From positions 62,001 through 126,000 of IMG/VR virus record IMGVR_UViG_3300017917_002434: 64,000 bases of DNA, one strand, 5' to 3'. Below the pieces are notes generated by a model. It was not told the DNA's origin and did no database searches. It worked only from the letters and a program-made list of their open reading frames with translations. Position numbers and translations under genes: made by a program. Shown one piece after another: positions 6,539 through 49,800 of this stretch; position 1 is the stretch's first letter, and the number at the start of each line of letters is the position of its first letter.

Positions 6539-6780
6539 TGTTTCATCCGCTTGAAGGTGATCTTAGTAAACTAAAAGATTCCGAAGTGGAATCTAAACTT
6601 CAAGAACTGACTAGAAAATACTATCAAGCATCTCGTTTAGGCAATCGAGAGCTATTGACACAACTGTCAACATTTGTTACAATATATAGAGAAGAAATGC
6701 GTAGCCGACAAGCCAAAGCATTATCTATAAACAATAATGTAACGAACGAAGACTTGGGTCAATTTATTAATGTCGATTAA
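6538..6780 (+). CDS. Hypothetical protein
   Basis: TAATG-coupled to the upstream gene. Confidence 0.6.
   Translation: MFHPLEGDLSKLKDSEVESKLQELTRKYYQASRLGNRELLTQLSTFVTIYREEMRSRQAKALSINNNVTNEDLGQFINVD
6655..6683 (+). promoter_or_regulatory. Sigma70-type promoter TTGACA-N17-TACAAT with palindromic -35
   Basis: TTGACA-caac-TGTCAA inverted repeat; lies at the structural/accessory boundary. Confidence 0.6.
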
Positions 6781-7243
6781 TACAAACGAAAATCTATTAC
6801 AAGGAATATTGAAACATGGTCCAAATATATTGGAGCATTGCCTTGTAGAAGAAAACAATCCAAATATCGAAAACTATATCCAAAGGATAAAGGAAGAAAA
6901 GCTCCTTTATCCTTTCCCGCTTACACAAGAACCTCAGGGTCGAAAATGGTTCATTCCTAAAGAGTACCGAGATTTTGATATCGAAGAATTTCTCTTAACC
7001 CAATGTCCTGAAGAAAATCTTGATAGGTTAGCGGAAGAATTAAAACTGTATAAAAAATACGACATGCTAGATCTTCTCAAAATGATGAAATATCTAGTAG
7101 ATAGCCTAAGAAAAAACAATATAGTATGGGGTGTAGGGCGAGGAAGTTCCGTTTCTAGCTACTGTTTATATCTAATAGGCATACATAAGATAGACAGCGT
7201 TAAATACAGATTACCAATATCTGACTTCTTTAAAGGAGAGTAA
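6770..7243 (+). CDS. Stand-alone fragment of DNA polymerase III alpha (DnaE palm region)
   Basis: RL.EEL...GVGRGSSVSSYCLYLIGIHKID..KY.L matches DnaE GPGRGS.AGSLVAY.LGIT..DP. Confidence 0.8.
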   Translation: MSINTNENLLQGILKHGPNILEHCLVEENNPNIENYIQRIKEEKLLYPFPLTQEPQGRKWFIPKEYRDFDIEEFLLTQCPEENLDRLAEELKLYKKYDMLDLLKMMKYLVDSLRKNNIVWGVGRGSSVSSYCLYLIGIHKIDSVKYRLPISDFFKGE

Positions 7244-7244
7244 A

Positions 7245-7466
7245 ATGGGAAAAACTTATAGAACTATGCAGGGCAAAGAAATCGACATGGAAAAACTTGC
7301 TCTATTAAACGAACTAACTCCAGCAGTAGGAAATGCTAGAGTAAACGCCAGAGGCGACGAACTAGGTCCCGGTGGCCAAATCATCAGAAAGCGTGAAGAC
7401 ATCGTTTCGGATTATTACGAAAAAAATCCTAAGAGTGTAAAATCGGAAAAGAAAGCTCAGGAATAA
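7245..7466 (+). CDS. Hypothetical protein
   Basis: Strong AGGAG ribosome-binding site; 73 aa. Confidence 0.65.
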   Translation: MGKTYRTMQGKEIDMEKLALLNELTPAVGNARVNARGDELGPGGQIIRKREDIVSDYYEKNPKSVKSEKKAQE

Positions 7467-27734: not shown

Positions 27735-30401
27735 TTGAGTTACGTTGACGCATTCTATAATCGCGATCAGGATACTATCCATATTGTCGAACGAGACGAT
27801 AAAGGAATTAGGCATTTTAAAGAATATCCTGCTCGACACATCTTTTACTTTCAAGACCCTAAAGGAAAATACACTAGTACTCACGGAGAACCGCTGAGCC
27901 GTGTAACCTGTAAAAATCTCAAAGATTTACATAAAGAACTTAAAATACATAGTGGCATGAAGCTCTACGAATCGGACATAAATCCGATTTATCGCTGTCT
28001 CGAAGACAATTATCTAAATCAAGATTCTCCTAAATTACAAGTAGCGTTTTTTGATATTGAAGTTGACTTTGATCCGGAACGTGGTTACGCATCGCCTGAA
28101 GATGCTTTTATGCCGATTACTGCTATAGCTATTCATTTACAATGGCTGAATACTCTAGTTTGTTTAGCCCTACCTCCAAAAACGCTAACTTTAGAAGAAG
28201 CCAAAAAACAAGTATCTGAATTTCCTAATACATATATCTTCGAAACAGAGGCTGAACTATTAGATAACTTCTTAAATCTCATCCAAGATGCTGATGTGTT
28301 AAGTGGTTGGAACTCAGAAGGCTTTGATATTCCTTACACAGTTAATCGTGTTACCAAAGTTCTCAGCAAAGATGACACAAGACGTTTCTGTTTGTGGGAT
28401 CAATATCCTAAGAAGCGTGAATACGAGAAATATGGTAGAACTTCTGTGACCTATGATCTCGTAGGTAGAGTACATCTAGATTTATTAGAAATCTATAGAA
28501 AATATACCTACGAAGAAAGACATTCGTATCGACTAGATGCTATCGCCGAATATGAATTAGGAGAAACTAAAACAGTCTATGAAGGTACATTAGATCAACT
28601 TTACAATAATGATTTCAAAAAGTTCATCGAATACAATAGACAAGACTGTGCTCTACTAGATAAACTAGACAATAAACTTAAATTCTTGGATCTCGCTAAT
28701 AAGATCGCACACGAAAATACAGTATTACTACAGACTACAATGGGTGCTGTAGCTGTTACAGAGCAGGCTATCATTAACGAGGCACATCGTAGAGGGATGA
28801 TAGTACCCAATCGGGTAAGAAGAGAACCTGGCTCTGAGCCAGCTGCTGGTGCTTATGTCGCTTATCCTAAGAAAGGCATCCACGAATGGATTGGTTCAGT
28901 TGATATTAACTCACTGTATCCTTCAGCAATTCGTGCCTTAAACATGGGACCAGAGACTATCGTAGGACAGTTGCGTCAAGACTACACTAAAAACTATATC
29001 GATCAAGAAATGGGCAAAGGAAAATCTTTCGCCGCTGCTTGGGAAGGTATATTTGGTAGTCTAGAATACGAATATGTGATGGAAAGAAACGTTGCCAAAG
29101 AAATTACTATCGACTGGGAAGGTGGGGGTAGTGATACACTCAGCGGTGCTCAGATCTATGATCTTATATTCGAAAACAATCAACCTTGGATGCTATCAGC
29201 AAACGGTACTATCTTTACCTACGAAAAAGAAGGTATTATTCCCGGACTGTTAAAGCGTTGGTATGCTGAACGTAAAGAGATGCAGGCCAAACTTAAAGAA
29301 TGTATCGCTGCTGGTAATAAAGTAGAAGAAGAATACTGGGACAAGCGACAGCTAGTTAAGAAGATTAATTTGAACAGTTTGTACGGTGCTATTCTTAATC
29401 CGGGTTGTAGGTTCTTTGATAATAGGATCGGTCAGAGTACTACACTCAGTGGTAGACAGATCGTCAAACATATGGCTAGTAAGATCAATGAAATAGCCAC
29501 AGGAGAATATGATTACAAAGGTAAAGCTGTAATCTACGGTGATACAGACTCATGTTATTTCTCAGCCTATCCTGTATTAAAGAAAGAAATTGAATCTGGA
29601 CAGTTGCCGTGGACCAAAGAAACTGTGGTTCAACTCTATGATCAGATCGCCGACGAAGTAAATGCCAGCTTTCCAAAAATGATGCAGGATAAGTTTCATT
29701 GTCCTAAGACTCGCGGAGAAGTTATTAAAGCAGGTAGAGAACTTGTTGCTTCAAAGGGGCTGTTTATTACCAAGAAGCGTTATGCTGTACTTTATTATGA
29801 TAAAGAAGGCAAACGTACAGATGTTAATGATAAACCTGGTAAAATCAAAGCCATGGGTCTTGATCTGAAACGTTCAGATACTCCTGTTGTAATTCAAGAC
29901 TTCCTTAGCAAAGTACTCGAGATGGTACTTAATGGTGTTCCTAGAGAAGAAGTTCTAGAATACATCACTGATTTCCGTACAGAGTTTAAGACTAGACCTG
30001 GTTGGGAGAAAGGTTCACCTAAACGTGCCAACAACATTACCGAGTATCAGGCTAAAGAAAAGAAACAAGGCAAAGCCAACATGCCCGGCCATGTTCGAGC
30101 TAGCTTAAACTGGAATACTCTGAAACGTATGCATGACGACAAGTACTCTATGGGGATCACTGACGGTGCTAAGGTTATTGTTTGTAAAGTCAAAGATAAT
30201 CCAATGGGCTATACTTCAGTGGCATACCCTGTTGACGAACTTAGATTGCCGCAATGGTTCAAAGATCTTCCGTTCGATGATTCCGAGATGGAGACTACAG
30301 TCATCGACGAAAAGCTAGAAAACCTTATTGGTGTTTTGGAATGGGACATCAGTTCAACAAGGTCAGATAACACATTCAGCAAATTGTTTGATTTTGAGTA
30401 A
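27735..30401 (+). CDS. Family B DNA polymerase (gp43-like) with 3'-5' exonuclease
   Basis: FDIEVD, GWNSEGFD, YNRQD, DINSLYPS, KINLNSLYG, YGDTDS, KKRY; TTG start. Confidence 0.96.
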   Translation: MSYVDAFYNRDQDTIHIVERDDKGIRHFKEYPARHIFYFQDPKGKYTSTHGEPLSRVTCKNLKDLHKELKIHSGMKLYESDINPIYRCLEDNYLNQDSPKLQVAFFDIEVDFDPERGYASPEDAFMPITAIAIHLQWLNTLVCLALPPKTLTLEEAKKQVSEFPNTYIFETEAELLDNFLNLIQDADVLSGWNSEGFDIPYTVNRVTKVLSKDDTRRFCLWDQYPKKREYEKYGRTSVTYDLVGRVHLDLLEIYRKYTYEERHSYRLDAIAEYELGETKTVYEGTLDQLYNNDFKKFIEYNRQDCALLDKLDNKLKFLDLANKIAHENTVLLQTTMGAVAVTEQAIINEAHRRGMIVPNRVRREPGSEPAAGAYVAYPKKGIHEWIGSVDINSLYPSAIRALNMGPETIVGQLRQDYTKNYIDQEMGKGKSFAAAWEGIFGSLEYEYVMERNVAKEITIDWEGGGSDTLSGAQIYDLIFENNQPWMLSANGTIFTYEKEGIIPGLLKRWYAERKEMQAKLKECIAAGNKVEEEYWDKRQLVKKINLNSLYGAILNPGCRFFDNRIGQSTTLSGRQIVKHMASKINEIATGEYDYKGKAVIYGDTDSCYFSAYPVLKKEIESGQLPWTKETVVQLYDQIADEVNASFPKMMQDKFHCPKTRGEVIKAGRELVASKGLFITKKRYAVLYYDKEGKRTDVNDKPGKIKAMGLDLKRSDTPVVIQDFLSKVLEMVLNGVPREEVLEYITDFRTEFKTRPGWEKGSPKRANNITEYQAKEKKQGKANMPGHVRASLNWNTLKRMHDDKYSMGITDGAKVIVCKVKDNPMGYTSVAYPVDELRLPQWFKDLPFDDSEMETTVIDEKLENLIGVLEWDISSTRSDNTFSKLFDFE

Positions 30402-31205: not shown

Positions 31206-31448
31206 ATGAAAGAGTGGCGTGACGCAGATCATAAGGTTTCTTATTATTTTGAAAAAGATAATGGTAGGATCATCGGTCAAGTATACAATCTAGCACATAC
31301 AAATATCTATGGTGCTAAAGTTTACAGCGAACGCAACGAAGAATTATATCTAGGTCAATATATCAGCTATGAATTCGCTAAAAAGGCCACTGAACATTTT
31401 TGGAACGTACAAGAGAGAACACTAACACATGAAGAAGCCACCAGTTAA
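31206..31448 (+). CDS. Hypothetical protein
   Basis: 80-aa ORF in operon context. Confidence 0.55.
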   Translation: MKEWRDADHKVSYYFEKDNGRIIGQVYNLAHTNIYGAKVYSERNEELYLGQYISYEFAKKATEHFWNVQERTLTHEEATS

Positions 31449-32955
31449 TTTAACCCCACTACAGAAAGACTACGCAGTATATCTACCTGCGATCAGTTGT
31501 TTCTTTTCAACATACATTAGCAAACAGAGATTTGACGAATTCGTTCCGCAAGATCGTATTCCTAAAGGATTTGATCGAGGCATCGAAGGTATGAACTTCT
31601 TAAATCCAGAACAGGGTTACTTTACCTACAAATATGGCTTATATTCAGCTGGTCACGCACAATTAGATCTAAATAAGACTATAACACAAGATGCTATGAT
31701 ACAAGATCGTGATCGTGCTAATACTTTGATCGTAGGCGATTCCGGCGGATATCAGATTGGTAAAGGTGTTCTTAAATTTGATTGGCAGAATTTCGAAGGA
31801 GCAGCAGCGAACAAGGTTCGCGACAACATCCTTAATTGGTTAGAATTAACTGCCGATTGGTCAATGTTGCTAGACGTCCCTACCTGGGCTTGTGATCATA
31901 TTCATGGTCCAAAAACAGGATTAAAAAGTTTCAATGATTGTTTAGAAAAAACACTTCACAATAACGACTATTTCATTAGAAATAGACTAGGTCAAACTAA
32001 ATTTTTAAATGTTCTTCAAGGTAGTGACTGGGAAACAGCACAGGCTTGGTATGAAGCAGTTAAACACTTGCCCACAGAAGGTTGGGCGATGGGTGGAAAG
32101 AATATGTGCGATATGGAAATCGCACTAAAAAGACTTATCATTCTAAGAGACGAAAAACTTTTAGATGATAGGAATTGGATGCACTTCTTGGGCACCGCTC
32201 AATTAGATTGGTCCTGCTATCTAACTTCTATTCAACGCCAAGTGAGGGAAAACATCAATGAAAACTTTACCATATCTTTTGACTGTGCCAGCCCATTTAT
32301 CGCAACAGCACACGGACTCGTCTATACTAACGCCCAGCACACAAACAAACGCTGGTCAGTCATCATGGACAAAGCACCAGACAACAAAGCCCTTAGCCAG
32401 GCTTTTCATGTCCCGTTCCCCTTTGAATCAGAAATCGGAAGAAGACTCACTCAAGGTGACATCTGCTGGTACAAGCCGGGAATGTTAAACAAAGTAGGCA
32501 AAGAAGGCAAAACATCTTGGGATAGTTTTGGTTACGCCCTAATGATGGCACATAATACCTACTGTCATATTGTTGCTGTACAACGTGCTAATAATTTGAT
32601 GGATATCGAAACTGCTCGATTCGCTCCCGATTGGAGAGAGTGGAAGAAGATCAAAGACTCGGACATGAGTGACGAGTATTCAGATTGGGTACCTAGAAAT
32701 ATACTTTACTTTGATCGTTTTGTAAAAGAATTATTCAAGAGCGAAACACCTATGCAGATGATCGAAGATGCTAAACCTATGCTATCAAATATGATGGGTA
32801 TGAGACTTAAAGGTGGGGTGGCTAAGAACCAATTTAACAGTTTGTTCGACGAAGAACAAAAAACCGGCGATGTAGAAGATTTCATGGATCCCGAAGATCC
32901 TAAGTTGAAAGAATTGGAAGAACTTTATTACGAACAGGAGGCTCAGAATGTATGA
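31429..32955 (+). CDS. TGT-fold DNA 7-deazaguanine transglycosylase (DpdA-like)
   Basis: GDSGGYQ, MLLDVP, NVLQG, GWAMGG, HFLG, SFDCASP TGT motifs; folE and queE nearby. Confidence 0.75.
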   Translation: MKKPPVNLTPLQKDYAVYLPAISCFFSTYISKQRFDEFVPQDRIPKGFDRGIEGMNFLNPEQGYFTYKYGLYSAGHAQLDLNKTITQDAMIQDRDRANTLIVGDSGGYQIGKGVLKFDWQNFEGAAANKVRDNILNWLELTADWSMLLDVPTWACDHIHGPKTGLKSFNDCLEKTLHNNDYFIRNRLGQTKFLNVLQGSDWETAQAWYEAVKHLPTEGWAMGGKNMCDMEIALKRLIILRDEKLLDDRNWMHFLGTAQLDWSCYLTSIQRQVRENINENFTISFDCASPFIATAHGLVYTNAQHTNKRWSVIMDKAPDNKALSQAFHVPFPFESEIGRRLTQGDICWYKPGMLNKVGKEGKTSWDSFGYALMMAHNTYCHIVAVQRANNLMDIETARFAPDWREWKKIKDSDMSDEYSDWVPRNILYFDRFVKELFKSETPMQMIEDAKPMLSNMMGMRLKGGVAKNQFNSLFDEEQKTGDVEDFMDPEDPKLKELEELYYEQEAQNV

Positions 32956-33835: not shown

Positions 33836-34290
33836 GAACCTGCGGAGAATGTACAGAATGCTGTACAGGAACATTACAGGGCGAAGTCCGAGGTTATAAA
33901 TTTGATAAAAATTCGCCCTGTTTCTTTTTAAAAGAAAATAAATGTAGCATTTATGAATCCCGTCCAGATCATCCTTGTAAAAATTATAGCTGTATGTGGT
34001 TAAACGATATTAGTATTCCTGATTTCATGAGACCAGATATTTCGAAGGTAGTTTTAACTAAACGGTCTGTTGATAATTTTGATTACATAGAAGCAGAAGA
34101 AGCTGCTCGAAAAATTATGTCTGCTGAAACCCTAGCTAACGTTATCAATTTCGCTGTCCAAACTAAACAGAATTTAGTATACAGAGTTTCGGGCAGACTA
34201 AGATGGTTTGGAGATCCAGAATTTATAAACTTTATGGATAATCAAAAAATAGTTACTAAAATTATTGAGGTAAAACCTTATGAAGCGTGA
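33832..34290 (+). CDS. YkgJ-like Cys-cluster (Zn or Fe-S) protein
   Basis: CGECTECC...CFFL...CSIYESRP..C..YSC. Confidence 0.75.
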   Translation: MRTCGECTECCTGTLQGEVRGYKFDKNSPCFFLKENKCSIYESRPDHPCKNYSCMWLNDISIPDFMRPDISKVVLTKRSVDNFDYIEAEEAARKIMSAETLANVINFAVQTKQNLVYRVSGRLRWFGDPEFINFMDNQKIVTKIIEVKPYEA

Positions 34291-34813
34291 TTACAGACAA
34301 GGTGAAGCAGAAAACATTACGTTTTTTGTAGGAGAAGAAATTGAAAAAACACCAGCATTTGGGCTTCGTACACTTTTTGTTGTCGGTGTTCACGATCCCT
34401 ATATTATTCTTGAGCTTGCTCGCAATAATAATTGTCGTCATATCTATTTCGGTGCTAACCAGAGTTTTAGAACTAACGGCGTCAATGACGCAGAAACTTG
34501 GCGGCCGTGGGAAGATATGATCTATGTCTGTCTCGATGCTGAAGATGGATTCTGGTGTACTTTAGATTTTGATGTACGCGAAACGGAAGGATTGCTAGAG
34601 AGCGGTCTTACCGAAAAGCGTAGATTTATTCCGCAGATTAGTGTAAAATTACCATATATTAATCAACTAGGCTATAACGCTACACTGAAGATTGATGATA
34701 AGAATTTCGCAGCAACTAATCCTGGGGTTTGGTGCCATAACCTACAGGATCTAATGGGTAGAGATAAGTTTACCAATTGGGATCAATATGGCAAGGATGA
34801 GATAATCAAATGA
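34280..34813 (+). CDS. Hypothetical protein in the deazaguanine region
   Basis: 177 aa; TLFVVG, HIYFGANQSF, NPGVWCH. Confidence 0.65.
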   Translation: MKRDYRQGEAENITFFVGEEIEKTPAFGLRTLFVVGVHDPYIILELARNNNCRHIYFGANQSFRTNGVNDAETWRPWEDMIYVCLDAEDGFWCTLDFDVRETEGLLESGLTEKRRFIPQISVKLPYINQLGYNATLKIDDKNFAATNPGVWCHNLQDLMGRDKFTNWDQYGKDEIIK

Positions 34814-35166: not shown

Positions 35167-35366
35167 AAGAGTTTACAGTAAAACAAAGTTCAGCATTTAG
35201 ACTGCGTGTTAAAAGTTGGAAATGCCTTAATCCTTCTGATCTAAATAGTATTGAATTTATTAACGAATCTCTCGACAACAAGGGAGAAGTTAGTCAGAGT
35301 TCTGTATATAATTTCTTCATGACTGACGACGAAGTTAAAACACTCTGCGAAGGAATGTTAAAGTGA
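35163..35366 (+). CDS. Hypothetical protein
   Basis: Coupled ORF. Confidence 0.55.
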   Translation: MKEFTVKQSSAFRLRVKSWKCLNPSDLNSIEFINESLDNKGEVSQSSVYNFFMTDDEVKTLCEGMLK

Positions 35367-35758
35367 TTGTTAAACAAGATATAAGACCCAACAAAATGAT
35401 TTGGGTTACATTCCGTAAAGAAGGAATCCATAAGTATCCAGCAGCCGCAACAGATCCCAATCTAGCAACAGGAGATGAATATGATGTATCGTTTTTGGCT
35501 AATCCCCATCGCCATATTTTTCATTTTAGGGTATGGCTTAGTGTCACCCATAATGACAGAGATGTGGAATTTATACAATTTAAGCGATGGCTCGAAAAAC
35601 TGTATTCTAGCAACGAAGGTGTATTGTCGCTAGACTATAAAAGTTGTGAGATGATGAGCGACGATTTATATGCTCAGATTCACGCAAAGTATCCAGACCG
35701 TGAGGTTTGGATTGAGGTCTCCGAAGACGGAGAAAATGGTTCATTCATCAAATATTAA
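35363..35758 (+). CDS. T-fold QueD-paralog (DpdL-like) protein
   Basis: EGIH..., LANPHRHIF (LxxxHRHxF), RDVEF, SCE, V.EDGENG; lacks the canonical QueD C..HGH motif. Confidence 0.7.
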   Translation: MIVKQDIRPNKMIWVTFRKEGIHKYPAAATDPNLATGDEYDVSFLANPHRHIFHFRVWLSVTHNDRDVEFIQFKRWLEKLYSSNEGVLSLDYKSCEMMSDDLYAQIHAKYPDREVWIEVSEDGENGSFIKY

Positions 35759-35767
35759 AAAGGAAAC

Positions 35768-35971
35768 ATGATGAAACAGCAAGTTGAGAAAATCTTTGAC
35801 GATCTCGACCGTTACTTGGATTTTTGCCGTTTTGAGCTTAGGGACTTTAATCCCGCTCATCTGTACGATAAAGATAATGAAAATTATCGTGCGTTTCTAA
35901 ACAGTCAGCGTCCTCAAAGACGCTGGGATAACAACCGTGGCTATAAGCCATATAATAAACGACATGGGTAA
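35768..35971 (+). CDS. Hypothetical protein
   Basis: AGGA RBS; 67 aa. Confidence 0.55.
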   Translation: MMKQQVEKIFDDLDRYLDFCRFELRDFNPAHLYDKDNENYRAFLNSQRPQRRWDNNRGYKPYNKRHG

Positions 35972-37058
35972 AATATTTCTTGTCGATCTTGAAGCAGTAG
36001 AAACAAGGTACACAGGCGAGTGGAAAACCCACTTGCCTGCCTTGTTAAGAAAGAGAGGTCACGATGTTCAAGTTATTAGTGGTCCTAAAGATATTCCTAG
36101 TGCCACTACTCCTGGTGCCTTTCTTAACTTTGGCGGCACTAATATCTATAAGTCTCGCCAAGTTGAAGAATTTAGTAGGTTATTTACATCCGGAGCAGTT
36201 AAGTCTGGGGATCATTTTATTTTTACTGATGCTTGGCATCCTGGTATCATAAACTTAAAATACATGAGTGAACTACTTAATATCAAAGTAGTTATACATG
36301 CTCTCTGGCATGCCGGATCATATGATCCCCAAGATTTTCTAGGTAGACTGATAGGCAATGCTCCATGGGTTAGACACGCTGAAAAGAGTTTCTTTCATGC
36401 CATAAATCATAACTATTTTGCTACTGACTTCCATATTAGAATGTTCGACAATAATCTTCTAAACGACGGTCTGATGGAAAATCCTTGGCGTTATGAAGAT
36501 ATGAAAGAATATCTAGAGAATAAAAAGATTATTCGATCAGGCTGGCCTATGGAGTATATGCCCGACACTCTATTAATGTATAAGAATATGCCTAAGCGTA
36601 ATCTTATCCTTTTCCCTCATCGTATAGCACCAGAAAAGCAACTTCCGATATTTGAAGATTTAAAAGAAAGATTGCCTCAATACGAATTTAAAGTATGCCA
36701 GGAATATCCGTTAACTAAGAATGAATATCACAATATGTTAGGTGAAGCTAAATTAGTTTTTAGTGCTAACCTACAAGAAACACTAGGCATCAGTTGGTAC
36801 GAAGGTGCTCTAGTAGACGCTATACCTATGGTTCCAAATAGGTTAAGCTATTCAGAAATGGCTTTAGATGATTTTAAATACCCTTCTGAGTGGACAGAAT
36901 CTTTCGAATCATATCACACACATAGAGAAAAGGTAGTACATCAAATTATCCAGTATATGGAAAATTATGAAAAATTCTTACCAAGCCTAAATAAACAGGT
37001 AGATGTATTAACTAAAAACTTCTTTAGTTGCGATAATCTATTAGAGATGTTAAAATAA
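35964..37058 (+). CDS. GT-B fold glycosyltransferase
   Basis: FPHRIAPEKQ and LQETLGISWYEG (E-x7-E) GT4-like motifs; start moved to MGKIF. Confidence 0.75.
   Translation: MGKIFLVDLEAVETRYTGEWKTHLPALLRKRGHDVQVISGPKDIPSATTPGAFLNFGGTNIYKSRQVEEFSRLFTSGAVKSGDHFIFTDAWHPGIINLKYMSELLNIKVVIHALWHAGSYDPQDFLGRLIGNAPWVRHAEKSFFHAINHNYFATDFHIRMFDNNLLNDGLMENPWRYEDMKEYLENKKIIRSGWPMEYMPDTLLMYKNMPKRNLILFPHRIAPEKQLPIFEDLKERLPQYEFKVCQEYPLTKNEYHNMLGEAKLVFSANLQETLGISWYEGALVDAIPMVPNRLSYSEMALDDFKYPSEWTESFESYHTHREKVVHQIIQYMENYEKFLPSLNKQVDVLTKNFFSCDNLLEMLK
37028..37056 (+). promoter_or_regulatory. Possible sigma70 promoter TTGCGA-N17-TAAAAT
   Basis: Upstream of folE; correct spacing. Confidence 0.45.
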
Positions 37059-37093
37059 TATGTCATCCACGACTATAACTCGGAGAAATTTAA

Positions 37094-37918
37094 TTGACAA
37101 CAAAATTTACACCAGATCCTGTCTTAAATGAAAAGATAGATAGAGAATTCAAACCAGACGAATACAAAGACGAATATGTGCCTCTAGACAAACCAGTATA
37201 TGTAAAGGCACAGGATAGAAAACAAGATGGAGCATATCTAGCCGATATCATCCGTGTTAAGATGAAACACGATGGTAAGAGATATTGGGCAGGTGATAAT
37301 ATTTCCGAATACGTCACTGAAGAAATGAAGCACAAGCTCATCGATGAAGCTACAGAAGCCTTTGAACTTGTATTAGATAGACTCTTGATTGATCGTGAGA
37401 ACGATCCTAACAGCCATGGAACAGCCCGCAGACTTGCAAAAATGTACTTCAACGAAATCATGTCAGGTCGATATGAACCGAGTCCCTCAGCCACAGCGTT
37501 CCCTAATGATACAGAGGACCGTTACGAAGGTATGCTGGTTGTTCGCAGTGAGCTTCGCAGTATGTGTAGCCATCATCACCAGCCCGTTAATGGTGTTGCC
37601 TATATTGGTATTATTGCGGCTTCTAAGCTCATTGGCCTCTCTAAGTACACACGCATCGCACAGTGGTGTGCCCGACGTGGTACTCTCCAGGAGGAACTTG
37701 CTAATGATATTGCTCGCGAGATCTCCAAAGCCACGGGAGCCAAAGACGTAGGCGTTTACATTCAAGCTACACATGGTTGCTGTGAAAACAGAGGCATCAT
37801 GGCACATAGTTCATTGACGCAGACTACAGTATTAAAGGGTGCGTTCAAAGACGATCAAAGTACAAAGAAAGAGTTCTTTGATAATATTAAACTACAACAA
37901 GATTTCGCTCCGAGATAA
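37094..37918 (+). CDS. folE: GTP cyclohydrolase I
   Basis: SMCSHH, IGLSKY.R, LQEEL, HGCCENRG. Confidence 0.93.
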   Translation: MTTKFTPDPVLNEKIDREFKPDEYKDEYVPLDKPVYVKAQDRKQDGAYLADIIRVKMKHDGKRYWAGDNISEYVTEEMKHKLIDEATEAFELVLDRLLIDRENDPNSHGTARRLAKMYFNEIMSGRYEPSPSATAFPNDTEDRYEGMLVVRSELRSMCSHHHQPVNGVAYIGIIAASKLIGLSKYTRIAQWCARRGTLQEELANDIAREISKATGAKDVGVYIQATHGCCENRGIMAHSSLTQTTVLKGAFKDDQSTKKEFFDNIKLQQDFAPR

Positions 37919-37919
37919 T

Positions 37920-38150
37920 ATGAATACAGCAGAACAAGCCACAGCATTTATAAACAGAGTAAAGAATCTCAAAACGTTTGAAGTAAAGCGTATGTTAGAT
38001 GAGCCTTTAGAATTTAGAGGTGGCCGTATACCGTTCGATATCAAGGCTAATCAAGAATGTGCGTGGTTTCAGGTTCTCGCTGTGAGCCAGAAAGAAGCAG
38101 AAGAAATGGTCGATGCTTGGATGCGAGGCGATGATGATTACGAGGCTTAA
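37920..38150 (+). CDS. Hypothetical protein
   Basis: Start moved to MNTAEQ, right after the folE stop. Confidence 0.55.
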   Translation: MNTAEQATAFINRVKNLKTFEVKRMLDEPLEFRGGRIPFDIKANQECAWFQVLAVSQKEAEEMVDAWMRGDDDYEA

Positions 38151-38589
38151 AGACGAATTGATGGTCCAGCAGCAACTACCCGACGGCCTAGATACTGTTA
38201 ACGGTGCTTGGCAACATATGGTAGCTGTAATTATGTTGAACCAAACTGGTCGTGGTCCTGTAAAAAATGTTTTTCCTATTTTCATAGATAGATGGAGGAC
38301 TCCAGGGGCATTTTATAGAGCCTTTAAGCATTTTGGTCAAGACGAAGATATACGAGATATTATCTGGCCCCTAGGACTAGTTAGTGTAAGAGCAAAACGT
38401 CTCAAGCGTATGACGGAAGATTTTTTAACCTGGGATCATAACGATGCTACTAAACTCTACGGCATTGGCAAATACGGTTCTGATTCATACGAAATTTTCT
38501 TTAAAAAGAATTATACAGTTCAACCAACAGATAAAGAGCTACAACGTTATCTAAAAGAAGAGGTATTTAATGTTTCTGAGATTACTTGA
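38131..38589 (+). CDS. HhH-GPD DNA glycosylase, MBD4-like
   Basis: WQHMVAVIMLNQT, PLGL...RAKRL, LYGIGKYGSDSYEIF, P.DK.L..Y parallel the MBD4 glycosylase domain. Confidence 0.75.
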   Translation: MMITRLKDELMVQQQLPDGLDTVNGAWQHMVAVIMLNQTGRGPVKNVFPIFIDRWRTPGAFYRAFKHFGQDEDIRDIIWPLGLVSVRAKRLKRMTEDFLTWDHNDATKLYGIGKYGSDSYEIFFKKNYTVQPTDKELQRYLKEEVFNVSEIT

Positions 38590-39034
38590 ACGACTAGGTC
38601 GTAAACGTATTATAATGGATCGTGTTGACAACGAACCGTACCTAGAAAGATATTATCTATTTCTAAAAGATCGTAAAACTTTTCCCTTTAATATCTTTCT
38701 ACATAAATTTTTAAAAGGGGATCCAGATGACGTCCATGATCATCCGTGGTCTTACGCTACTCTAATTTTGAAAGGTGGTTACTATGAATGGACTCCGACG
38801 TTTGATGAGCATAACAACCAAGTTGGAGAAACTAGGCATTGGCGTGGCCCTGGCCATTTTCGTATTTGCAGTCCTAATAGCTATCATCGCATCGAACTTA
38901 AAGATGGGGTAACTGCTTGGACTCTGTTTATGCCGGGGCCTCAGAAACGAGAATGGGGATTTCTCGTAGATAACAAATGGATTCAAAACGAACAATACAT
39001 AGCACAACGCAAGGAGTCAAATGTTAAAACGTAA
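38570..39034 (+). CDS. Cupin-fold metal-binding protein
   Basis: HDHPW....IL.GGY.E ... YHRI ... WTLF. Confidence 0.7.
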   Translation: MFLRLLERLGRKRIIMDRVDNEPYLERYYLFLKDRKTFPFNIFLHKFLKGDPDDVHDHPWSYATLILKGGYYEWTPTFDEHNNQVGETRHWRGPGHFRICSPNSYHRIELKDGVTAWTLFMPGPQKREWGFLVDNKWIQNEQYIAQRKESNVKT

Positions 39035-39614
39035 AGTAAGTTGGCACGAATTTCAGAATTTAGTTTCTAAAATCTGCAGAGACATCAGTCTAAGTAACTG
39101 GCGTCCTGATTATGTAGTAGGCATTACTAGAGGTGGATTATTACCAGCGGTGATGATAAGTCAGTATTTCAAAGTACCTTGTGAGACTCTAAAAGTTAGC
39201 TTACGAGGTAATGCCGGAGAAGTAGATACAGAAAGTAACCTCTGGATGGCGTCTGACGCTTTAGGTTACAATAGAACTAAAGAAGTCGCTGATGAAAATG
39301 ACATTGAAGCAATTTTTGAAGCTGCGACTGAGTTATTAGAAAACGGCGAAACATATAAAAATATATTGATAGTAGACGATATTAACGATACTGGTGCTAC
39401 AATAAACTGGATATTAAAAGACTGGCCGTCTAGTTGCTTTCCATCCGATCCTATGTGGCAAGATGTTTGGAATAATAATGTTAGATTTGCTACAGTATTC
39501 GATAATCTAGCCAGTCAAGCAGAAGTCTCTATGGATTATGTAGGTGAGGAAATAAACAAAGCCGAAAATCCTGTTTGGATAGAATTTCCTTTCGAAGAAT
39601 GGTGGACTAAATGA
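39021..39614 (+). CDS. Type I purine phosphoribosyltransferase (Gpt-like)
   Basis: VVGITRGGL.PA, PRPP loop ILIVDDINDTGAT, WIEFP.E. Confidence 0.85.
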   Translation: MLKRKVSWHEFQNLVSKICRDISLSNWRPDYVVGITRGGLLPAVMISQYFKVPCETLKVSLRGNAGEVDTESNLWMASDALGYNRTKEVADENDIEAIFEAATELLENGETYKNILIVDDINDTGATINWILKDWPSSCFPSDPMWQDVWNNNVRFATVFDNLASQAEVSMDYVGEEINKAENPVWIEFPFEEWWTK

Positions 39615-42225: not shown

Positions 42226-42370
42226 TGACGATGGTGTTTTAACTTTTCCGCCAGAGCTGTTAGAAGCTAACGGATGGAAAGAAGGCGATGTGCTAGTTTG
42301 GAAAAATAATGAGGACGGTTCTTGGACATTGTCTAAAAAACTTGACAACGACAAAGAAGAGAGTGTATAA
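42203..42370 (+). CDS. AbrB/MazE/SpoVT-like small protein, 55 aa (not in ORF track)
   Basis: AGGAG RBS; MRWVLTVDDDGVLTFPPELLEANGWKEGDVLVW. Confidence 0.7.
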   Translation: MRWVLTVDDDGVLTFPPELLEANGWKEGDVLVWKNNEDGSWTLSKKLDNDKEESV

Positions 42371-42371
42371 T
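42342..42371 (+). promoter_or_regulatory. Sigma70 promoter TTGACA-N18-TATAAT
   Basis: Perfect hexamers; predicted start site near ATG 42378. Confidence 0.65.
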
Positions 42372-42377
42372 ATAACT

Positions 42378-42656
42378 ATGAACACCAAATCTCACGAAAT
42401 CATGAGCATTCTTCAAGAAGAATGTTCCGAAGTAATCCAAGCAGTTTCGAAAATTAATAGATTCGGAATCGATAATTACAAACCAGGAAAACCAAAAACT
42501 AACAGAGAACATCTAGAAGAAGAATTGGGAGACCTATTAGCAATGGTCGATCTTTTAGAAAAAGATGGTATCATCTCTAAAGATAAAATGGAAGTGGCTA
42601 AGAAAGCCAAATTCGAAAAACTAAAAAAATGGTCAAGTATCTATGAGCAAAATTAA
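42378..42656 (+). CDS. MazG-like NTP pyrophosphatase
   Basis: LQEECSEVIQAVSK...LEEELGDL; start moved to MNTKS. Confidence 0.8.
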   Translation: MNTKSHEIMSILQEECSEVIQAVSKINRFGIDNYKPGKPKTNREHLEEELGDLLAMVDLLEKDGIISKDKMEVAKKAKFEKLKKWSSIYEQN

Positions 42657-43494
42657 AATAGCAGAACTGTTTTACAGCATACAAGGTGAAGGACGTTATA
42701 TGGGCGTGCCTTCTGTTTTCTTACGTACATTTGGTTGTAACTTTAAGTGTGCTGGGTTTGGTATGCCTAAAGGGCAACTTAGTAAAGAAATCGAAGATAT
42801 CGCAGCCAGAGTACATTATTTTAAAACATATGAAGAACTCCCATTGGTTTCTACTGGTTGTGATAGTTACGCTAGCTGGGATCCTCGCTTTAAGGATCTT
42901 AGTCCAATGCTTACTAGCGACGCCATCGCACAAAGAATCTGCGAGATTCTACCGTTCAATGAATGGAGAGACGAGCATCTCGTCATCACAGGAGGAGAAC
43001 CGTTGCTTGGGTGGCAACGTGCTTACCCCGAACTGTTAGATCATCCTAAGATGAAGGATCTCAGAGAAATTACGTTTGAAACAAATGGTACTCAAAAACT
43101 TACTCCAGAATTTAAAAAATATCTATTAGACTGGGGCATGGAGAATCGAGGATATCATAGATTGACTTTTAGTGTCAGTGCCAAACTTAGTTGTTCTGGT
43201 GAGCCGAGACACGAAGCTATACGTCCCGATGTTGTTTGTGAATATGAAGAAGTCGGTTATACATATCTTAAATTTGTCATCGCCACAGAAGAAGATGCCG
43301 AGGAAGCCATCGAAACCTATGACATTTATCGTGCTGAAGGATTTAGCGGGCCTTGTTATCTAATGCCTGTAGGTGGAGTAGAAAGTGTTTACAATTTGAA
43401 TAACCGTCGAGTAGCAGAATTAGCTATGAAGAGCGGCTTACGTTATAGTGACAGATTACAAGTACCGTTATTTAAGAATGAGTGGGGAACATAA
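42643..43494 (+). CDS. queE: 7-carboxy-7-deazaguanine synthase (radical SAM)
   Basis: ELFYSIQGEG, VFLRTFGCN..C, CDS, VITGGEP, ETNG, RLQV. Confidence 0.88.
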   Translation: MSKIKIAELFYSIQGEGRYMGVPSVFLRTFGCNFKCAGFGMPKGQLSKEIEDIAARVHYFKTYEELPLVSTGCDSYASWDPRFKDLSPMLTSDAIAQRICEILPFNEWRDEHLVITGGEPLLGWQRAYPELLDHPKMKDLREITFETNGTQKLTPEFKKYLLDWGMENRGYHRLTFSVSAKLSCSGEPRHEAIRPDVVCEYEEVGYTYLKFVIATEEDAEEAIETYDIYRAEGFSGPCYLMPVGGVESVYNLNNRRVAELAMKSGLRYSDRLQVPLFKNEWGT

Positions 43495-47453: not shown

Positions 47454-47760
47454 AAAATACTTCAAGCCGCCCAAAGATGTTATAAAAGAATGGCCTGAAG
47501 TATTCGAAGAGATATACATGAGCTCGATGCCCATTAAGTATATCCATGGAGTAGAACTAACCTTTCACGACGGCAGAGTTTGGGAAATTGATCTTCCAGA
47601 ACAACTAGATCTAGTTGACGAAGATGATATTTTGGAAAAACTTTCTGAAGGTATCAGAGATTTCCAAGATGAAATCGTTACCGTTAACTTTCAAGTTGAC
47701 ATAGACCGACTTAAACAAGATATTTTAAAATTAACAAAAAACATATTAGGTGACAAATGA
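47446..47760 (+). CDS. Hypothetical protein
   Basis: GTG start; coupled ORF. Confidence 0.55.
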   Translation: MPKKYFKPPKDVIKEWPEVFEEIYMSSMPIKYIHGVELTFHDGRVWEIDLPEQLDLVDEDDILEKLSEGIRDFQDEIVTVNFQVDIDRLKQDILKLTKNILGDK

Positions 47761-48422
47761 ATGTTAATCTCGTTTCCTATTCACAACCCACAGGTCAATT
47801 TAGACAGTTGGGTATCGAAGACGCACAGGAACTCATCGCGTATTGTGCCCGTGTCAGCAATCCCGCAAACCAACTTAACACCGAGACATCAGAAAAACTC
47901 ATCAGATACTTGGTCAAACACAAACACTGGTCACCACTCGAAATGGTCTCAGCCTGTATCGAAATCACTACAACCAGAGATATCGCAAGACAGATCCTTA
48001 GACACAGAAGTTTCAGCTTCCAAGAATTCAGTCAGCGATATGCTGATCCTACTAAAGACCTCTCGTTTGTGGTTAGAGAAGCACGACTTCAAGACCCAAA
48101 GAATCGACAGAACAGTGTCGAAACGGATGACGAACGCCTACAACGAGATTGGGAACTTAGACAAAACAATGTCATCACAGAAGCCAGAATGGCCTACCAA
48201 TGGGCTATCGATAATGGCATAGCCAAAGAACAGGCTCGTGCTGTACTGCCAGAAGGTTTAATTGAAAGTAAACTTTATATGAATGGAACGCTACGTAGTT
48301 GGATTCATTTTATTGAATTACGTAGTGCTAACGGCACACAAAAAGAACACCAAGAAGTTGCGATAGCCTGTGCTAAAGTTATCTCAGAAATATTTCCGTT
48401 AACTAACGATTTTATTGGTTAG
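47757..48422 (+). CDS. thyX: Flavin-dependent thymidylate synthase
   Basis: HWSPLE, RQILRHRSFSFQEFSQRY, EQARAVLP, LRS. Confidence 0.95.
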   Translation: MNVNLVSYSQPTGQFRQLGIEDAQELIAYCARVSNPANQLNTETSEKLIRYLVKHKHWSPLEMVSACIEITTTRDIARQILRHRSFSFQEFSQRYADPTKDLSFVVREARLQDPKNRQNSVETDDERLQRDWELRQNNVITEARMAYQWAIDNGIAKEQARAVLPEGLIESKLYMNGTLRSWIHFIELRSANGTQKEHQEVAIACAKVISEIFPLTNDFIG

Positions 48423-49800
48423 TAATTTTCCACTGATCATATATAGATCGCATTTCGGGGAACGTGCTTAAAAAGTTCGTTCCTCGTCTTTTATCGTGTT
48501 CATCAACAAACGCTACAAAATCTTTTCTGATTGTAGGCAATAAATTTTCGTCGTATCTATGGTCTTCTGCCCATTTGGCTACACGTTGAAATTTTGATAA
48601 TTCCGTGCTATCAAAATGTTTATAACTTAAATTATCAACTTTAGTTTTCATGTAATCAATAGCTTTATATAAACGTTGTATCTGATCGTCGTTGGCTATC
48701 TGTAAACTAAGATGTGGTGGTTCTAAAAGATACGGAGTATCCATCTGTATTCTTCGATTGAATCTTGTATTATATTTTTGTCTTAATTCTAAAATTTTAT
48801 CTAATAATTCTTCGAAATTATAAATGCTTAAAAGATTAACTGTTATCATAAATCCTAATTTACCGTTAGGAACTTCGTTAAGATAACGATGTATATTATT
48901 TTCCCATTGGACTAAATCTAATCCATTTCTAATATATTCTGCTTGATTACCCCAAGTATCAACACTAGTGTAAAGCATAATCTCTTTTACTTTTTTGTTT
49001 TCTTTTAAAGATTTAGCACGAACGATAAATTTATCAAGATTACGCTGCGGTACACTCATATTACTATTAATAGCGAATTGTAAATCTGATCTTGGATGGT
49101 CTTCTATGTAATCTAACATCTTCATGAAATTAGTACTTAATAATGGTTCTCCTCCGGTTACTCTTAGAGTCTCTAAATTTTTATAGCACTCCGGAAACCA
49201 TTGCCAAAAAGCATCAATGTAGGGATTATTCTCTTCTTTATATACAGTACGAGCTTTAGGATTAATTGCGTATTGCCTACGATTAGGCATATATTGTAAA
49301 GGATATTCTCCGTGTTTTTTGATCTCTCCTTCCCAAGCACTGCTAATAGTTGGAGCACAATATATACACTTCATCTGGCATTCTGAACCAAAACTTAATT
49401 CCATATATCTAGGATAAACATCAGCATCCCATGGTAAATTTTTTACATACTCGATACTCGGAATGGTATTTTCAAATTCCCAACTTCTTAAATGTCTGTC
49501 ACTGATTTGGCCTAGATCTTCTAGTGCCCAACAATAACTACATTCTTGAGGACGTTCGCCCTCTAACATCATCTTCCTTTGTTGTTTTTTATAATTACTA
49601 TTGTGTAATGCCGCAGGATTATTGTTCACTTCATCAACACTGACTCTGTGCATAGAAGGATGATAACAACTATGGTTATCTCCGGTATGAAGATGTATTG
49701 TGACCATGTGCCACTTAGCTAGACAAAACCCTTTACCTGTTTTATCTAGTTCATTAGCAATCTTGATATATTTTTTATTCGGGTCTCGACGCCAAAACAT
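48412..49800 (-). CDS. Radical SAM protein with N-terminal auxiliary Cys (twitch-like) domain
   Basis: CQMKCIYC, TGGEPL; N-terminal CLAKW..SCYH..CSYCW. Confidence 0.85.
   Translation of the reverse strand: MFWRRDPNKKYIKIANELDKTGKGFCLAKWHMVTIHLHTGDNHSCYHPSMHRVSVDEVNNNPAALHNSNYKKQQRKMMLEGERPQECSYCWALEDLGQISDRHLRSWEFENTIPSIEYVKNLPWDADVYPRYMELSFGSECQMKCIYCAPTISSAWEGEIKKHGEYPLQYMPNRRQYAINPKARTVYKEENNPYIDAFWQWFPECYKNLETLRVTGGEPLLSTNFMKMLDYIEDHPRSDLQFAINSNMSVPQRNLDKFIVRAKSLKENKKVKEIMLYTSVDTWGNQAEYIRNGLDLVQWENNIHRYLNEVPNGKLGFMITVNLLSIYNFEELLDKILELRQKYNTRFNRRIQMDTPYLLEPPHLSLQIANDDQIQRLYKAIDYMKTKVDNLSYKHFDSTELSKFQRVAKWAEDHRYDENLLPTIRKDFVAFVDEHDKRRGTNFLSTFPEMRSIYDQWKITNQ

Follow-up and report, generated by a model that had tools for sequence, protein, structure and literature searches.

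DNA in which guanine is replaced by 7-deazaguanine has been described in Cellulophaga phage phiST, which encodes FolE, QueD, QueE, DpdL and MazG next to its polymerase, lacks QueC, and uses a short, divergent TGT-family transglycosylase, DpdA3 (259 aa), to yield plain dDG with H at C7 (PMC10516641). Sugar decoration of phage DNA, by contrast, has been described on pyrimidines: the T-even phage alpha/beta-glucosyltransferases and the RB69/DLP3/HY126 arabinosyltransferases acting on 5-hydroxycytosine are GT-B enzymes that decorate an already non-canonical base in DNA after replication (PMC13326640). All known sugar decorations of natural DNA sit on hmC, 5-hydroxyC and hmU/base J, and all eight known deazaguanine DNA bases lack sugars. 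Here we analyse a window of 64,000 nucleotides (positions 62,001 to 126,000 of IMG/VR record IMGVR_UViG_3300017917_002434, a freshwater jumbo phage contig of 269.7 kb estimated to be 76% complete) in which a predicted glycosyltransferase (GT) lies among deazaguanine genes, as an earlier note on the sequence had pointed out. The genes that concern us, in window coordinates, are:

27735..30401, + strand: family B DNA polymerase, which places the modification genes in the replication module
31429..32955, + strand: predicted divergent DpdA/TGT-family DNA guanine transglycosylase, 508 aa (the "o508 type")
34280..34813, + strand: conserved 177-aa protein between DpdA and DpdL, with no assigned function
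35363..35758, + strand: DpdL, a QueD-like T-fold protein (131 aa, GTG start), the proposed 7-carboxy-7-deazaguanine decarboxylase
35768..35971, + strand: conserved 67-aa ORF with a basic C-terminal tail, overlapping the GT start by 8 bases, with no assigned function
35964..37058, + strand: GT-B, GT4-like retaining glycosyltransferase, 364 aa, the gene in question
37094..37918, + strand: GTP cyclohydrolase I, FolE (274 aa, TTG start), the first step of the deazaguanine pathway
38570..39034, + strand: cupin ("cysteine dioxygenase" PHROG), probably not part of the module
39021..39614, + strand: xanthine/guanine-type phosphoribosyltransferase (PRT)
42309..42656, + strand: MazG-type nucleotide pyrophosphohydrolase
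42643..43494, + strand: QueE-like radical SAM enzyme (7-carboxy-7-deazaguanine synthase)
47757..48422, + strand: ThyX, the flavin-dependent thymidylate synthase, which supplies dTMP and is not a hydroxymethylase

The gene order reported in the earlier note, T-fold gene, 67-aa ORF, GT and folE on one strand, is confirmed. The GT reading frame extends from a GTG at 35937 (373 aa), but the ATG at 35964 gives the 364-aa protein that is on record letter for letter. FolE matches PF01227 (1.1e-39), phrog_2197 (2.6e-45) and NF006824 (6.5e-40). The T-fold protein reads LANPHRHIF, matching the DpdL signature LxxxHRHxF that stands in place of the QueD motif CxxxHGH (PMC10516641); the motif is conserved in 19 of 21 family members inspected, and His23, H49, R50, H51, F53 and an SCEM motif are invariant in the family alignment. 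It matches phrog_17812 at 2.7e-33, hits the founding DpdL of phiST by tblastn (33% identity, 1e-9) together with 28 other phage records, and its family profile aligns to the phage's own QueD/PTPS, encoded elsewhere on the contig (hhalign E 4e-4). The 67-aa ORF is a real gene, found by tblastn in 79 of 80 related viral loci at a median 54% identity and also present in two loci from metagenome-assembled genomes (predicted pI 9.2). The 177-aa protein is found in 69 of 80 related loci and is homologous to ACP17 ASD50402, which lies next to that phage's DpdA (blastp 4e-9); it has no Pfam hit, and an Atlas search gave only weak leads.

Two genes that the earlier note did not see are what make this a DNA-modification system. 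The 508-aa ORF carries GDSGGYQ (D104) and SFDCASPF (D285) motifs that are invariant across 19 homologues and align with the DSGG and YDS motifs of the ACP17, X1 and BUCT-ZZ01 DpdAs, and although its AF2 model is only moderate (pLDDT 71), the top 50 Foldseek PDB hits are all tRNA-guanine transglycosylases (E 2e-7 to 1.5e-6, probability 1.0). It is 42% identical to PA5oct EST35_0316, which lies directly upstream of that phage's GT. It has no hit to Pfam TGT (PF01702), a model that was uninformative for such divergent proteins, no BLAST hit to phiST DpdA3, and only a low-probability hhalign match to the ACP17-type DpdAs (3.7%, E 0.012), and looks like a further subfamily beyond the named DpdA1-4. 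The QueE-like protein matches five NCBIfam QueE models at 4.5e-13 to 9e-10, all below their curated cut-offs, with a weak Radical_SAM hit, and is homologous to the annotated QueE of PA5oct and ACP17. Profile scans of the contig gave no QueC above noise, although these too were uninformative at such divergence. The polymerase (PF00136 1.6e-36, PF03104 5e-21) has the same neighbourhood in Phosso, PA5oct, ACP17 and X1. MazG (PF03819 2.2e-7) has a counterpart next to DpdL in phiST (PMC10516641), and the PRT (PF00156 8e-14, NF006613 3.8e-10), with homologues in the same clusters of BUCT-ZZ01 (annotated XGPRT, blastp 3e-14) and PA5oct (EST35_0321, 4e-9), possibly recycles the guanine released by DpdA back into the GTP pool.

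Searched alone, the GT sequence found nothing in Pfam (no hit at E<=0.01), NCBIfam, PHROG or PDB, and only the family alignment and the fold gave the assignment. Of 58 family members, 34 match PF00534 Glycos_transf_1 (best 1.3e-8), and the family profile hits PDB 8xsg, a glucosyltransferase, at 7e-5. The AF2 model (pLDDT 95, pTM 0.92) has the two Rossmann-like domains of the GT-B topology and matches BshA, MshA, glycogen synthase and sucrose-phosphate synthase (Foldseek E about 1e-9, with probability 1.0 to the first three; VIA Z of 24-26 over about 300 aligned residues), placing it with the GT4-like retaining enzymes of the PF00534/PF13439 clan. The EX7E motif, E272-TLGISWY-E280, is intact; across 58 sequences E280 is invariant and E272 at least 90% conserved, as are R220 and K225, expected to bind the donor diphosphate, while H116 and G118 are also conserved (both invariant in one alignment, G118 in a second). 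The family comprises 1078 clusters at 50% identity and is very abundant in freshwater viromes, with more than 8000 close relatives.

The association of this GT with deazaguanine genes is strongly supported. Among 50,697 phage records, all 17 that carry the GT fall within the 29 that carry DpdL, and BCSR5, found by hand, adds an 18th. The GT is adjacent to DpdL and/or a long DpdA in every lineage examined, at least seven, including this phage, Phosso, the PA5oct group, ACP17, X1/BUDD, BCSR5 and BUCT-ZZ01, as well as in metagenome members only 28-33% identical. On the DpdL tree the GT label changes at least 3 times; every GT-less DpdL phage checked has the short DpdA3 and every GT-bearing one has a long DpdA. 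In 43 loci from prokaryote assemblies, 33 have an o508-type DpdA within about 2 kb of the GT and 26 have DpdL, whereas twelve bacterial loci have the GT and DpdA but no DpdL within 8 kb, so the acceptor may not be the DpdL product specifically. In isolates the pair sits in operons with Vut_1/YhhQ-like deazapurine-precursor transporters, and in Alphaproteobacteria it lies in integrase-flanked islands with such transporters and nucleases.

We propose that the window encodes a 7-deazaguanine DNA-modification system in which FolE, QueD and QueE would make 7-carboxy-7-deazaguanine, DpdL would decarboxylate it to 7-deazaguanine, and the long DpdA would exchange guanine in phage DNA for that base. 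The GT is then best read as a dedicated accessory that uses a host (or phage-made) NDP-sugar to add a sugar to the deazaguanine base once it is in DNA, perhaps as a second protective layer, much as T-even phages glucosylate hmC; we give this reading a probability of about 0.5. What the analysis establishes is the identity of the genes and the exclusive, repeated association of the GT with DpdL and long-DpdA genes, while the catalytic activity of DpdL (proposed rather than demonstrated even for the founding member; PMC10516641), the deazaguanine base as acceptor, transfer on DNA and the nature of the sugar are inferred, and nothing computed here shows that a sugar ends up on DNA. The earlier note's interpretation, that the GT may hypermodify a 7-substituted deazaguanine, is partly supported: the enzyme belongs functionally with the deazaguanine genes rather than with hmC, protein or LPS glycosylation, but DpdL predicts a base with no 7-substituent, which undercuts the proposed chemistry. 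As 7-deazaguanine has no hydroxyl, amine or carboxyl at C7, an O-glycoside of the T4 kind is impossible if DpdL really yields the 7-H base, and the remaining sites have drawbacks, since N2 lies in the minor groove and C7/C8 would need C-glycosylation, with O6 the other option. In favour of a DNA acceptor, PA5oct carries the triad and its DNA resists G-containing restriction sites and has a modified G that has not been identified (10.1101/2025.03.31.646159), the phage arabinosyltransferases acting on 5-hydroxycytosine have the same structural neighbours (3mbo, 3c4q, 6kih; PMC13326640), and many defence glycosylases target plain 7-deazaguanine DNA (10.1101/2025.10.29.685425), giving a selective reason for a further shield. 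On the other hand, the closest solved structures all take small-molecule acceptors, and the GT family is mildly acidic (median pI 5.7), although isoelectric point does not discriminate DNA binding here because the DpdAs are acidic too.

Of the alternatives, it is possible, if less likely, that the GT glycosylates free 7-deazaguanine or a precursor, and that the long DpdAs accompanying it are specialised to insert the sugar-bearing base. The GT co-varies with DpdA type rather than DpdL clade (416-570 aa in GT-bearing systems, 260-290 aa for the DpdA3 of GT-less ones), its top structural neighbours (BshA, MshA, LmbT, sucrose-phosphate synthase) act on small molecules, HuiG, a GT4-clan enzyme, glycosylates a free preQ0-derived base (10.64898/2026.04.15.718813), and the bacterial operons read transporter-GT-DpdA. 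However, TGT-family pockets bury the base, every characterised DNA sugar modification in phages is added to the polymer (PMC13326640), as in T4, and long DpdAs also occur without the GT, for example in Pseudomonas phage pf16; a complex prediction for the GT with DpdL (one copy each) returned no answer (score 0.00), which is not evidence either way. A soluble deazapurine or pterin glycoside that never enters DNA, whether to sequester or detoxify the free base or as a product like the cyanobacterial tetrahydrobiopterin glucosides, appears unlikely. FolE, a PTPS-like T-fold protein and a GT-B enzyme is also the gene logic of pterin glycoside synthesis, and UDP-glucose:tetrahydrobiopterin glucosyltransferase is a recurrent structural neighbour of phage GT4-like enzymes (PMC13326640), yet the constant partners here are QueE, DpdL and above all DpdA rather than pterin reductases, with QueE and DpdA accompanying the GT in every lineage with enough flanking sequence. 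Furthermore, bacterial islands carry the GT and DpdA with no FolE at all, and the family is about 80% conserved within a jumbo-phage lineage, the level of its core replication genes.

A hydroxylated pyrimidine acceptor (hmC, 5-hydroxyC or hmU), with the deazaguanine neighbours coincidental, is close to refuted, despite the shared fold and the presence of a ThyA homologue in PA5oct and Phosso. In agreement with the earlier note, which saw no dCMP hydroxymethylase and ascribed dTMP supply to ThyX (PF02511 1.9e-45), no ThyA-type dCMP/dUMP hydroxymethylase or hydroxylase homologue (PF00303) was found on this contig, an absence that is not absolute given its estimated completeness, nor in the complete genomes of ACP17, X1 and BUCT-ZZ01, and the GT was never found in phage records that lack DpdL. 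We also considered the cupin as a hydroxylase that could create a sugar acceptor; it matches phrog_4786 at 1.7e-38 and is conserved within this lineage (68 of 80 loci), but it is common in unrelated phages (106 records) and absent from PA5oct, ACP17, X1, BUCT-ZZ01 and Phosso, and was rejected. Action on a protein, LPS, teichoic acid or a virion component, or a non-catalytic partnership with DpdA, is likewise improbable: JGI's automatic name for the family is "glycosyltransferase involved in cell wall biosynthesis" and the contig carries sugar-nucleotide genes elsewhere, but strict nesting in DpdL/DpdA clusters across phages of Pseudomonas, Acidovorax, Xanthomonas, Burkholderia, Sinorhizobium and Synechococcus, and in bacterial islands, argues against a host-surface role, and the EX7E motif is invariant or nearly so.

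More tentatively, at slightly less than even odds, phages of many hosts, including the cultivable PA5oct, ACP17, X1, BCSR5, BUCT-ZZ01 and Phosso, and a set of alphaproteobacterial islands may make a glycosylated 7-deazaguanine in DNA with a conserved pair of long DpdA and GT4-like GT. This would be the first sugar-bearing purine known in natural DNA, joined by a linkage of an unprecedented kind (N2-, O6- or C-glycosidic), and in bacteria the pair would be the modification half of a new Dpd-like restriction-modification system. The earlier note did not know such a modification to be characterised in phage DNA, and we found no paper describing a glycosylated deazaguanine in phage DNA, in literature searches that did not cover subscription journals. 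The association points to a further layer of purine hypermodification and offers a candidate for three loose ends: the unidentified modified G of the therapy-candidate phage PA5oct, the failure to reconstitute dDG from ACP17 dpdL plus dpdA in E. coli, and how phages might escape the many glycosylases and END nucleases that target deazaguanine DNA.

Several described systems share parts of this arrangement. In huimycin biosynthesis, with which the dapiramicin-type pathways may be grouped, HuiG attaches GlcNAc to a 7-deazaguanine-derived heterocycle, a free, O-methylated preQ0 base, in actinomycete secondary metabolism, where DpdA is absent by definition (10.64898/2026.04.15.718813). Mammalian QTMAN/QTGAL add a hexose to a 7-deazaguanine derivative already in a nucleic acid, but the substrate is tRNA and the acceptor is the cyclopentenediol hydroxyl of queuosine, a substituent that this gene set cannot make. 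The bacterial GT-DpdA loci resemble the Dpd restriction-modification islands (dPreQ0/dADG; PMC6884629) in their integrase- or resolvase-flanked setting beside nuclease-like and defence genes (CoiA-like nuclease, HEPN, ABC-3C); classical dpd clusters, however, use bDpdA with DpdB/DpdC and are not known to have a glycosyltransferase, whereas here an o508-type DpdA is paired with one or two GTs and a Vut_1 transporter. The GT shares its structural neighbours BshA, MshA and sucrose-phosphate synthase with the phage arabinosyltransferases, yet the T-even, RB69, DLP3 and HY126 acceptors are pyrimidines with a hydroxyl made by a ThyA homologue, the partners here are purine-pathway genes, and T4 alpha/beta-GT do not appear among the top 50 structural matches. 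With phiST the locus shares the FolE, QueD, QueE, DpdL and MazG gene set near the polymerase, without a detected QueC, and a divergent TGT-family transglycosylase; it differs in carrying the GT, of which phiST has no family member, and in its 508-aa DpdA in place of the short DpdA3 that accompanies plain dDG.

The 269.7-kb IMG/VR phage contig, of which bases 62001-126000 are considered here, is estimated to be 76% complete, and near-identical sequence is held by freshwater, pond, river, lake and aquaculture metagenomes. The gene order described in the earlier note was confirmed, with all four of its ORFs present on the + strand. Together with further genes of this neighborhood, which are discussed below, they are as follows (window coordinates):

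31429-32955, +, 508-aa divergent DpdA
35363-35758, +, 131-aa T-fold protein, DpdL
35768-35971, +, 67-aa conserved ORF
35937-37058, +, GT-B glycosyltransferase (GT), 373 aa from a GTG at 35937, more likely 364 aa from the ATG at 35964
37094-37918, +, 274-aa FolE
38113-38589, +, 158-aa ORF with a weak HhH-GPD match
39021-39614, +, xanthine/guanine-type phosphoribosyltransferase
42309-42656, +, MazG
42643-43494, +, QueE-like protein
47757-48422, +, ThyX
48412-49800, -, 462-aa weak member of the radical SAM family

The later GT start is preferred because it gives a protein that is on record letter for letter. FolE is supported by a match to PF01227 (1.1e-39), and the 67-aa ORF, which overlaps the GT start by 8 bases, was detected by tblastn in 79 of 80 related viral loci, so it is a real gene, though one without an assigned function. 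Coding strand and GC skew both flip at about 48400, with genes on the + strand up to ThyX and on the minus strand from 48412 onward, and with cumulative GC skew peaking at about 48 kb; this marks a divergent or convergent module boundary.

On its own, the glycosyltransferase matched no Pfam, NCBIfam, PHROG or PDB sequence. An exhaustive profile-free search nevertheless recovered 1078 clusters at 50% identity, while a word-index search was saturated by relatives at about 80% identity or more. Of 58 diverse members, 34 hit PF00534 (Glycos_transf_1), and the AlphaFold model built on that alignment is excellent (pLDDT 95, pTM 0.92), matching the retaining GT-B enzymes BshA, MshA, glycogen synthase, sucrose-phosphate synthase, LmbT and PglA (Foldseek E about 1e-9; VIA-align Z of 24-26). 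The GT4 hallmark EX7E is present as E272...E280, of which E280 is invariant and E272 at least 90% conserved; H116, G118, R220 and K225 are also conserved. The GT-B call of the earlier note is therefore correct, and the enzyme looks catalytically intact as judged from sequence and model.

The T-fold gene is DpdL. The 131-aa protein carries L-ANP-HRH-I-F, which is the LxxxHRHxF signature defined by Hutinet, Cui and colleagues for DpdL, the QueD-like protein that they proposed as the decarboxylase converting 7-carboxy-7-deazaguanine (CDG) to 7-deazaguanine (PMC10516641). In support of this assignment, it hits the founding DpdL of Cellulophaga phage phiST (33% identity, 1e-9), in which 7-deazaguanine replaces all guanine in the DNA, as well as 28 other phage records, and its family profile aligns to this phage's own QueD (E 4e-4). 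DpdL is not always a stand-alone protein: in Vibrio phage Bakedbeans (gp176; locus L107 of our set, 6212-7363) and Chryseobacterium phage MA9V-3 (locus L108, 6464-7345) it forms the C-terminal domain of a larger protein whose N-terminal part (about 170-255 aa) has no detectable relatives among the proteins compared.

Two further components had been missed in the earlier note. The 508-aa ORF at 31429-32955, which has no Pfam hit, is a divergent DpdA: GDSGGYQ and SFDCASPF, the two catalytic-aspartate motifs of the TGT family, are invariant in 19 homologues, and the top 50 PDB matches of its model are all tRNA-guanine transglycosylases. It belongs to a family of long (400-570 aa) proteins of predicted TGT fold with invariant DSGG and FDC motifs, hereafter the o508 type, whose members include PA5oct EST35_0316 (locus L012, 6391-8013), a copy in locus L099 (2634-3842) and copies in the bacterial loci L122-L148. 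Pfam TGT does not detect this family, and BLAST links it neither to DpdA3 nor, except marginally, to the ACP17-type DpdA; it looks like an unnamed DpdA subfamily, and it supplies the "missing" transglycosylase of PA5oct. The second missed component, the ORF at 42643-43494, matches five NCBIfam QueE models.

Between FolE and QueE lie the MazG, a HIT protein and the phosphoribosyltransferase. The latter recurs in the deazaguanine clusters of BUCT-ZZ01 (locus L095, 4093-4554) and PA5oct (L012, 10342-10776), and it is possible that it recycles the guanine released from DNA by DpdA back to GMP/GTP, the substrate of FolE. The 158-aa ORF just downstream of folE has only a weak match to HhH-GPD, the DNA glycosylase superfamily (E 0.005, below the cut-off); a "glycosylase" is annotated beside DpdL in Phosso, but the two proteins are not detectably related. 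QueD is at contig position 45.7 kb, while searches of the contig returned no QueC and no ThyA homologue. The contig also has 14 matches to the radical SAM family, 11 of them above the Pfam cut-off, an unusual load for a phage; one weak member lies in the window, and there are members outside it (contig coordinates 5316-32583 and 259035-259523), with most clustered in the first 33 kb. The gene set therefore predicts a pathway from GTP to CDG, from CDG to 7-deazaguanine by DpdL, and then exchange into DNA by DpdA.

Several lines of evidence place the GT within this system. Of 50,697 phage records, 17 carry this GT and 29 carry DpdL, and all 17 are among the 29; Burkholderia phage BCSR5 was additionally found to have a more distant copy (PF00534 9e-11; blastp 3e-21 to the GT studied here), bringing the total to 18. 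These represent at least six separate isolate lineages on different hosts, in each of which the GT sits beside DpdL, DpdA or both: Sinorhizobium Phosso (DpdL-GT), Pseudomonas PA5oct-like phages (DpdA-GT-DpdL in PA5oct, whose GT is EST35_0317), Acidovorax ACP17 (DpdA-GT-DpdL-QueE), Xanthomonas X1/BUDD (GT-DpdA-DpdL-QueE in X1), Synechococcus BUCT-ZZ01 (DpdA-DpdL-GT) and Burkholderia BCSR5 (GT-DpdA). Metagenome members only 28-33% identical again have DpdL next door, and one has an o508-type DpdA and FolE. Furthermore, of 43 loci in one-genome-per-species prokaryote assemblies, 33 have an o508-type DpdA within about 2 kb of the GT and 26 have DpdL, most of the exceptions being truncated contigs. 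The complete genomes of ACP17, X1 and BUCT-ZZ01, like this contig, lack any ThyA homologue, which removes the hmC, 5-hydroxyC and hmU route as a general acceptor.

We next considered which partner the GT tracks. A maximum-likelihood tree of 21 DpdLs shows GT-bearing and GT-less phages interleaved, with well-supported branches forcing at least three changes: PA5oct is sister to GT-less Aeromonas Ahp1 (99/98 support), and GT-less Rhizobium RHph_I1_18 is sister to X1/ACP17/BCSR5. In some close relatives of this phage (loci L028, L043 and L058; GT 72-77% identical), the DpdL is only 33-39% identical to the one in the window and clusters with the BUCT-ZZ01 type on the tree, so DpdL has been swapped within the lineage while the GT stayed. 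The DpdA type, in contrast, follows the GT. The GT-less phages phiST, MA9V-3, D479, Ahp1 and RHph_I1_18 carry the short phiST-type DpdA3 (260-290 aa core), whereas every GT-bearing system has a long DpdA, either of the ACP17/X1/ZZ01/BCSR5 type (416-446 aa, whose N-terminal 255 aa resemble DpdA2 of Vibrio phages) or of the o508 type. DpdL therefore looks like the same enzyme everywhere, and the GT an optional module that travels with a particular kind of transglycosylase.

In alphaproteobacterial isolates, the GT-DpdA pair lies in mobile, integrase- or resolvase-flanked islands. In Magnetospirillum aberrantis SpK (L138), a CoiA-like nuclease-domain protein is followed by GT, DpdL, DpdA and QueD, with an integrase and a HEPN protein nearby; in Pelagibacterium mangrovi (L122), a resolvase is followed by DpdA, a Vut_1/YhhQ-like transporter and the GT in overlapping ORFs; and in Shimia ponticola (L136), ABC-3C genes and a MASE1 histidine kinase with a LuxR regulator precede Vut_1, GT, DpdA, a 585-aa protein without an assigned function, a second GT and an integrase. 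YhhQ-family proteins import deazapurine precursors. These islands could represent a Dpd-like restriction-modification or defence system with a sugar step. Twelve such loci have no DpdL within 8 kb, so the acceptor of the GT may be the deazaguanine core rather than the DpdL product specifically.

No NDP-sugar gene is present in the cluster itself. Elsewhere on the contig, sugar-nucleotide-type genes occur in two regions (L110 and L111), one at about 217.6-220.1 kb with a PfkB carbohydrate kinase and an NAD-dependent epimerase/dehydratase, and one at about 240.7-244.4 kb with a second, GDP-mannose-dehydratase-like, epimerase/dehydratase, two methyltransferases and a cytidylyltransferase-like protein fused to a mannose-6-phosphate-isomerase C-terminal cupin; these are a possible source of an unusual NDP-sugar that may or may not feed this GT. 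Other GT-bearing systems hint at extra sugar chemistry. PA5oct has a short epimerase-like ORF two genes after its GT, and a second, different GT4-like glycosyltransferase lies next to the DpdA-GT pair in some systems, namely BUCT-ZZ01 (UTS52035; L095, 6010-7353), where it is next to DpdA, S. ponticola (L136, 12281-13477), and loci L143 and L146, hinting at a disaccharide or alternative sugars.

Taken together, the analysis establishes the identities of the genes, an intact GT active-site motif, and an exclusive, repeated association of the GT with the DNA deazaguanine machinery; that the acceptor is the deazaguanine base and that the sugar ends up in DNA are our inferences. The earlier note's proposal that the GT hypermodifies a 7-substituted deazaguanine in DNA is only partly supported, as the link to deazaguanine stands but the chemistry that it suggested does not fit the gene set. 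Indeed, the weak point of any version is chemical: 7-deazaguanine has only H at C7, leaving as candidate attachment sites N2 (in the minor groove, for which huimycin reportedly offers a precedent), O6, or a C-glycoside at the electron-rich C7/C8, between which we cannot choose. Moreover, the activity of DpdL is itself unproven, and ACP17 dpdL plus dpdA gave no dDG in E. coli, a failure that a missing GT could explain.

We favor transfer on DNA after DpdA has inserted the base (probability about 0.5). Every characterized DNA sugar modification is added to the polymer; the RB69/DLP3 arabinosyltransferases that do this have the same structural neighbors, 3mbo, 3c4q and 6kih (PMC13326640); and TGT-type pockets bury the base. 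There is also a selective reason for a second layer, because many defence glycosylases attack plain 7-deazaguanine DNA (10.1101/2025.10.29.685425) and END nucleases sense modified G in PA5oct (10.1101/2025.03.31.646159). The main alternative, which we consider less likely, is that the free base is glycosylated and then inserted by the specialized long DpdA; this view draws support from the co-variation of GT and DpdA, from the small-molecule acceptors of the nearest structures, and from HuiG, a GT4-clan enzyme that glycosylates a free preQ0-derived base (10.64898/2026.04.15.718813).

It is possible, at somewhat less than even odds, that the system makes a chemically new base, and the question is unusually open to testing because several carriers are in culture. 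We found no paper describing the membership of the GT in the deazaguanine system, the o508-type DpdA or the bacterial GT-DpdA islands, and the 2025 END-nuclease preprint notes only QueE and PTPS in PA5oct, leaving its modified G unidentified (10.1101/2025.03.31.646159). The deazaguanine system itself is known; the arrangement described here differs from it in the added glycosyltransferase, in the o508-type DpdA, and in the pairing of the two in bacterial islands.
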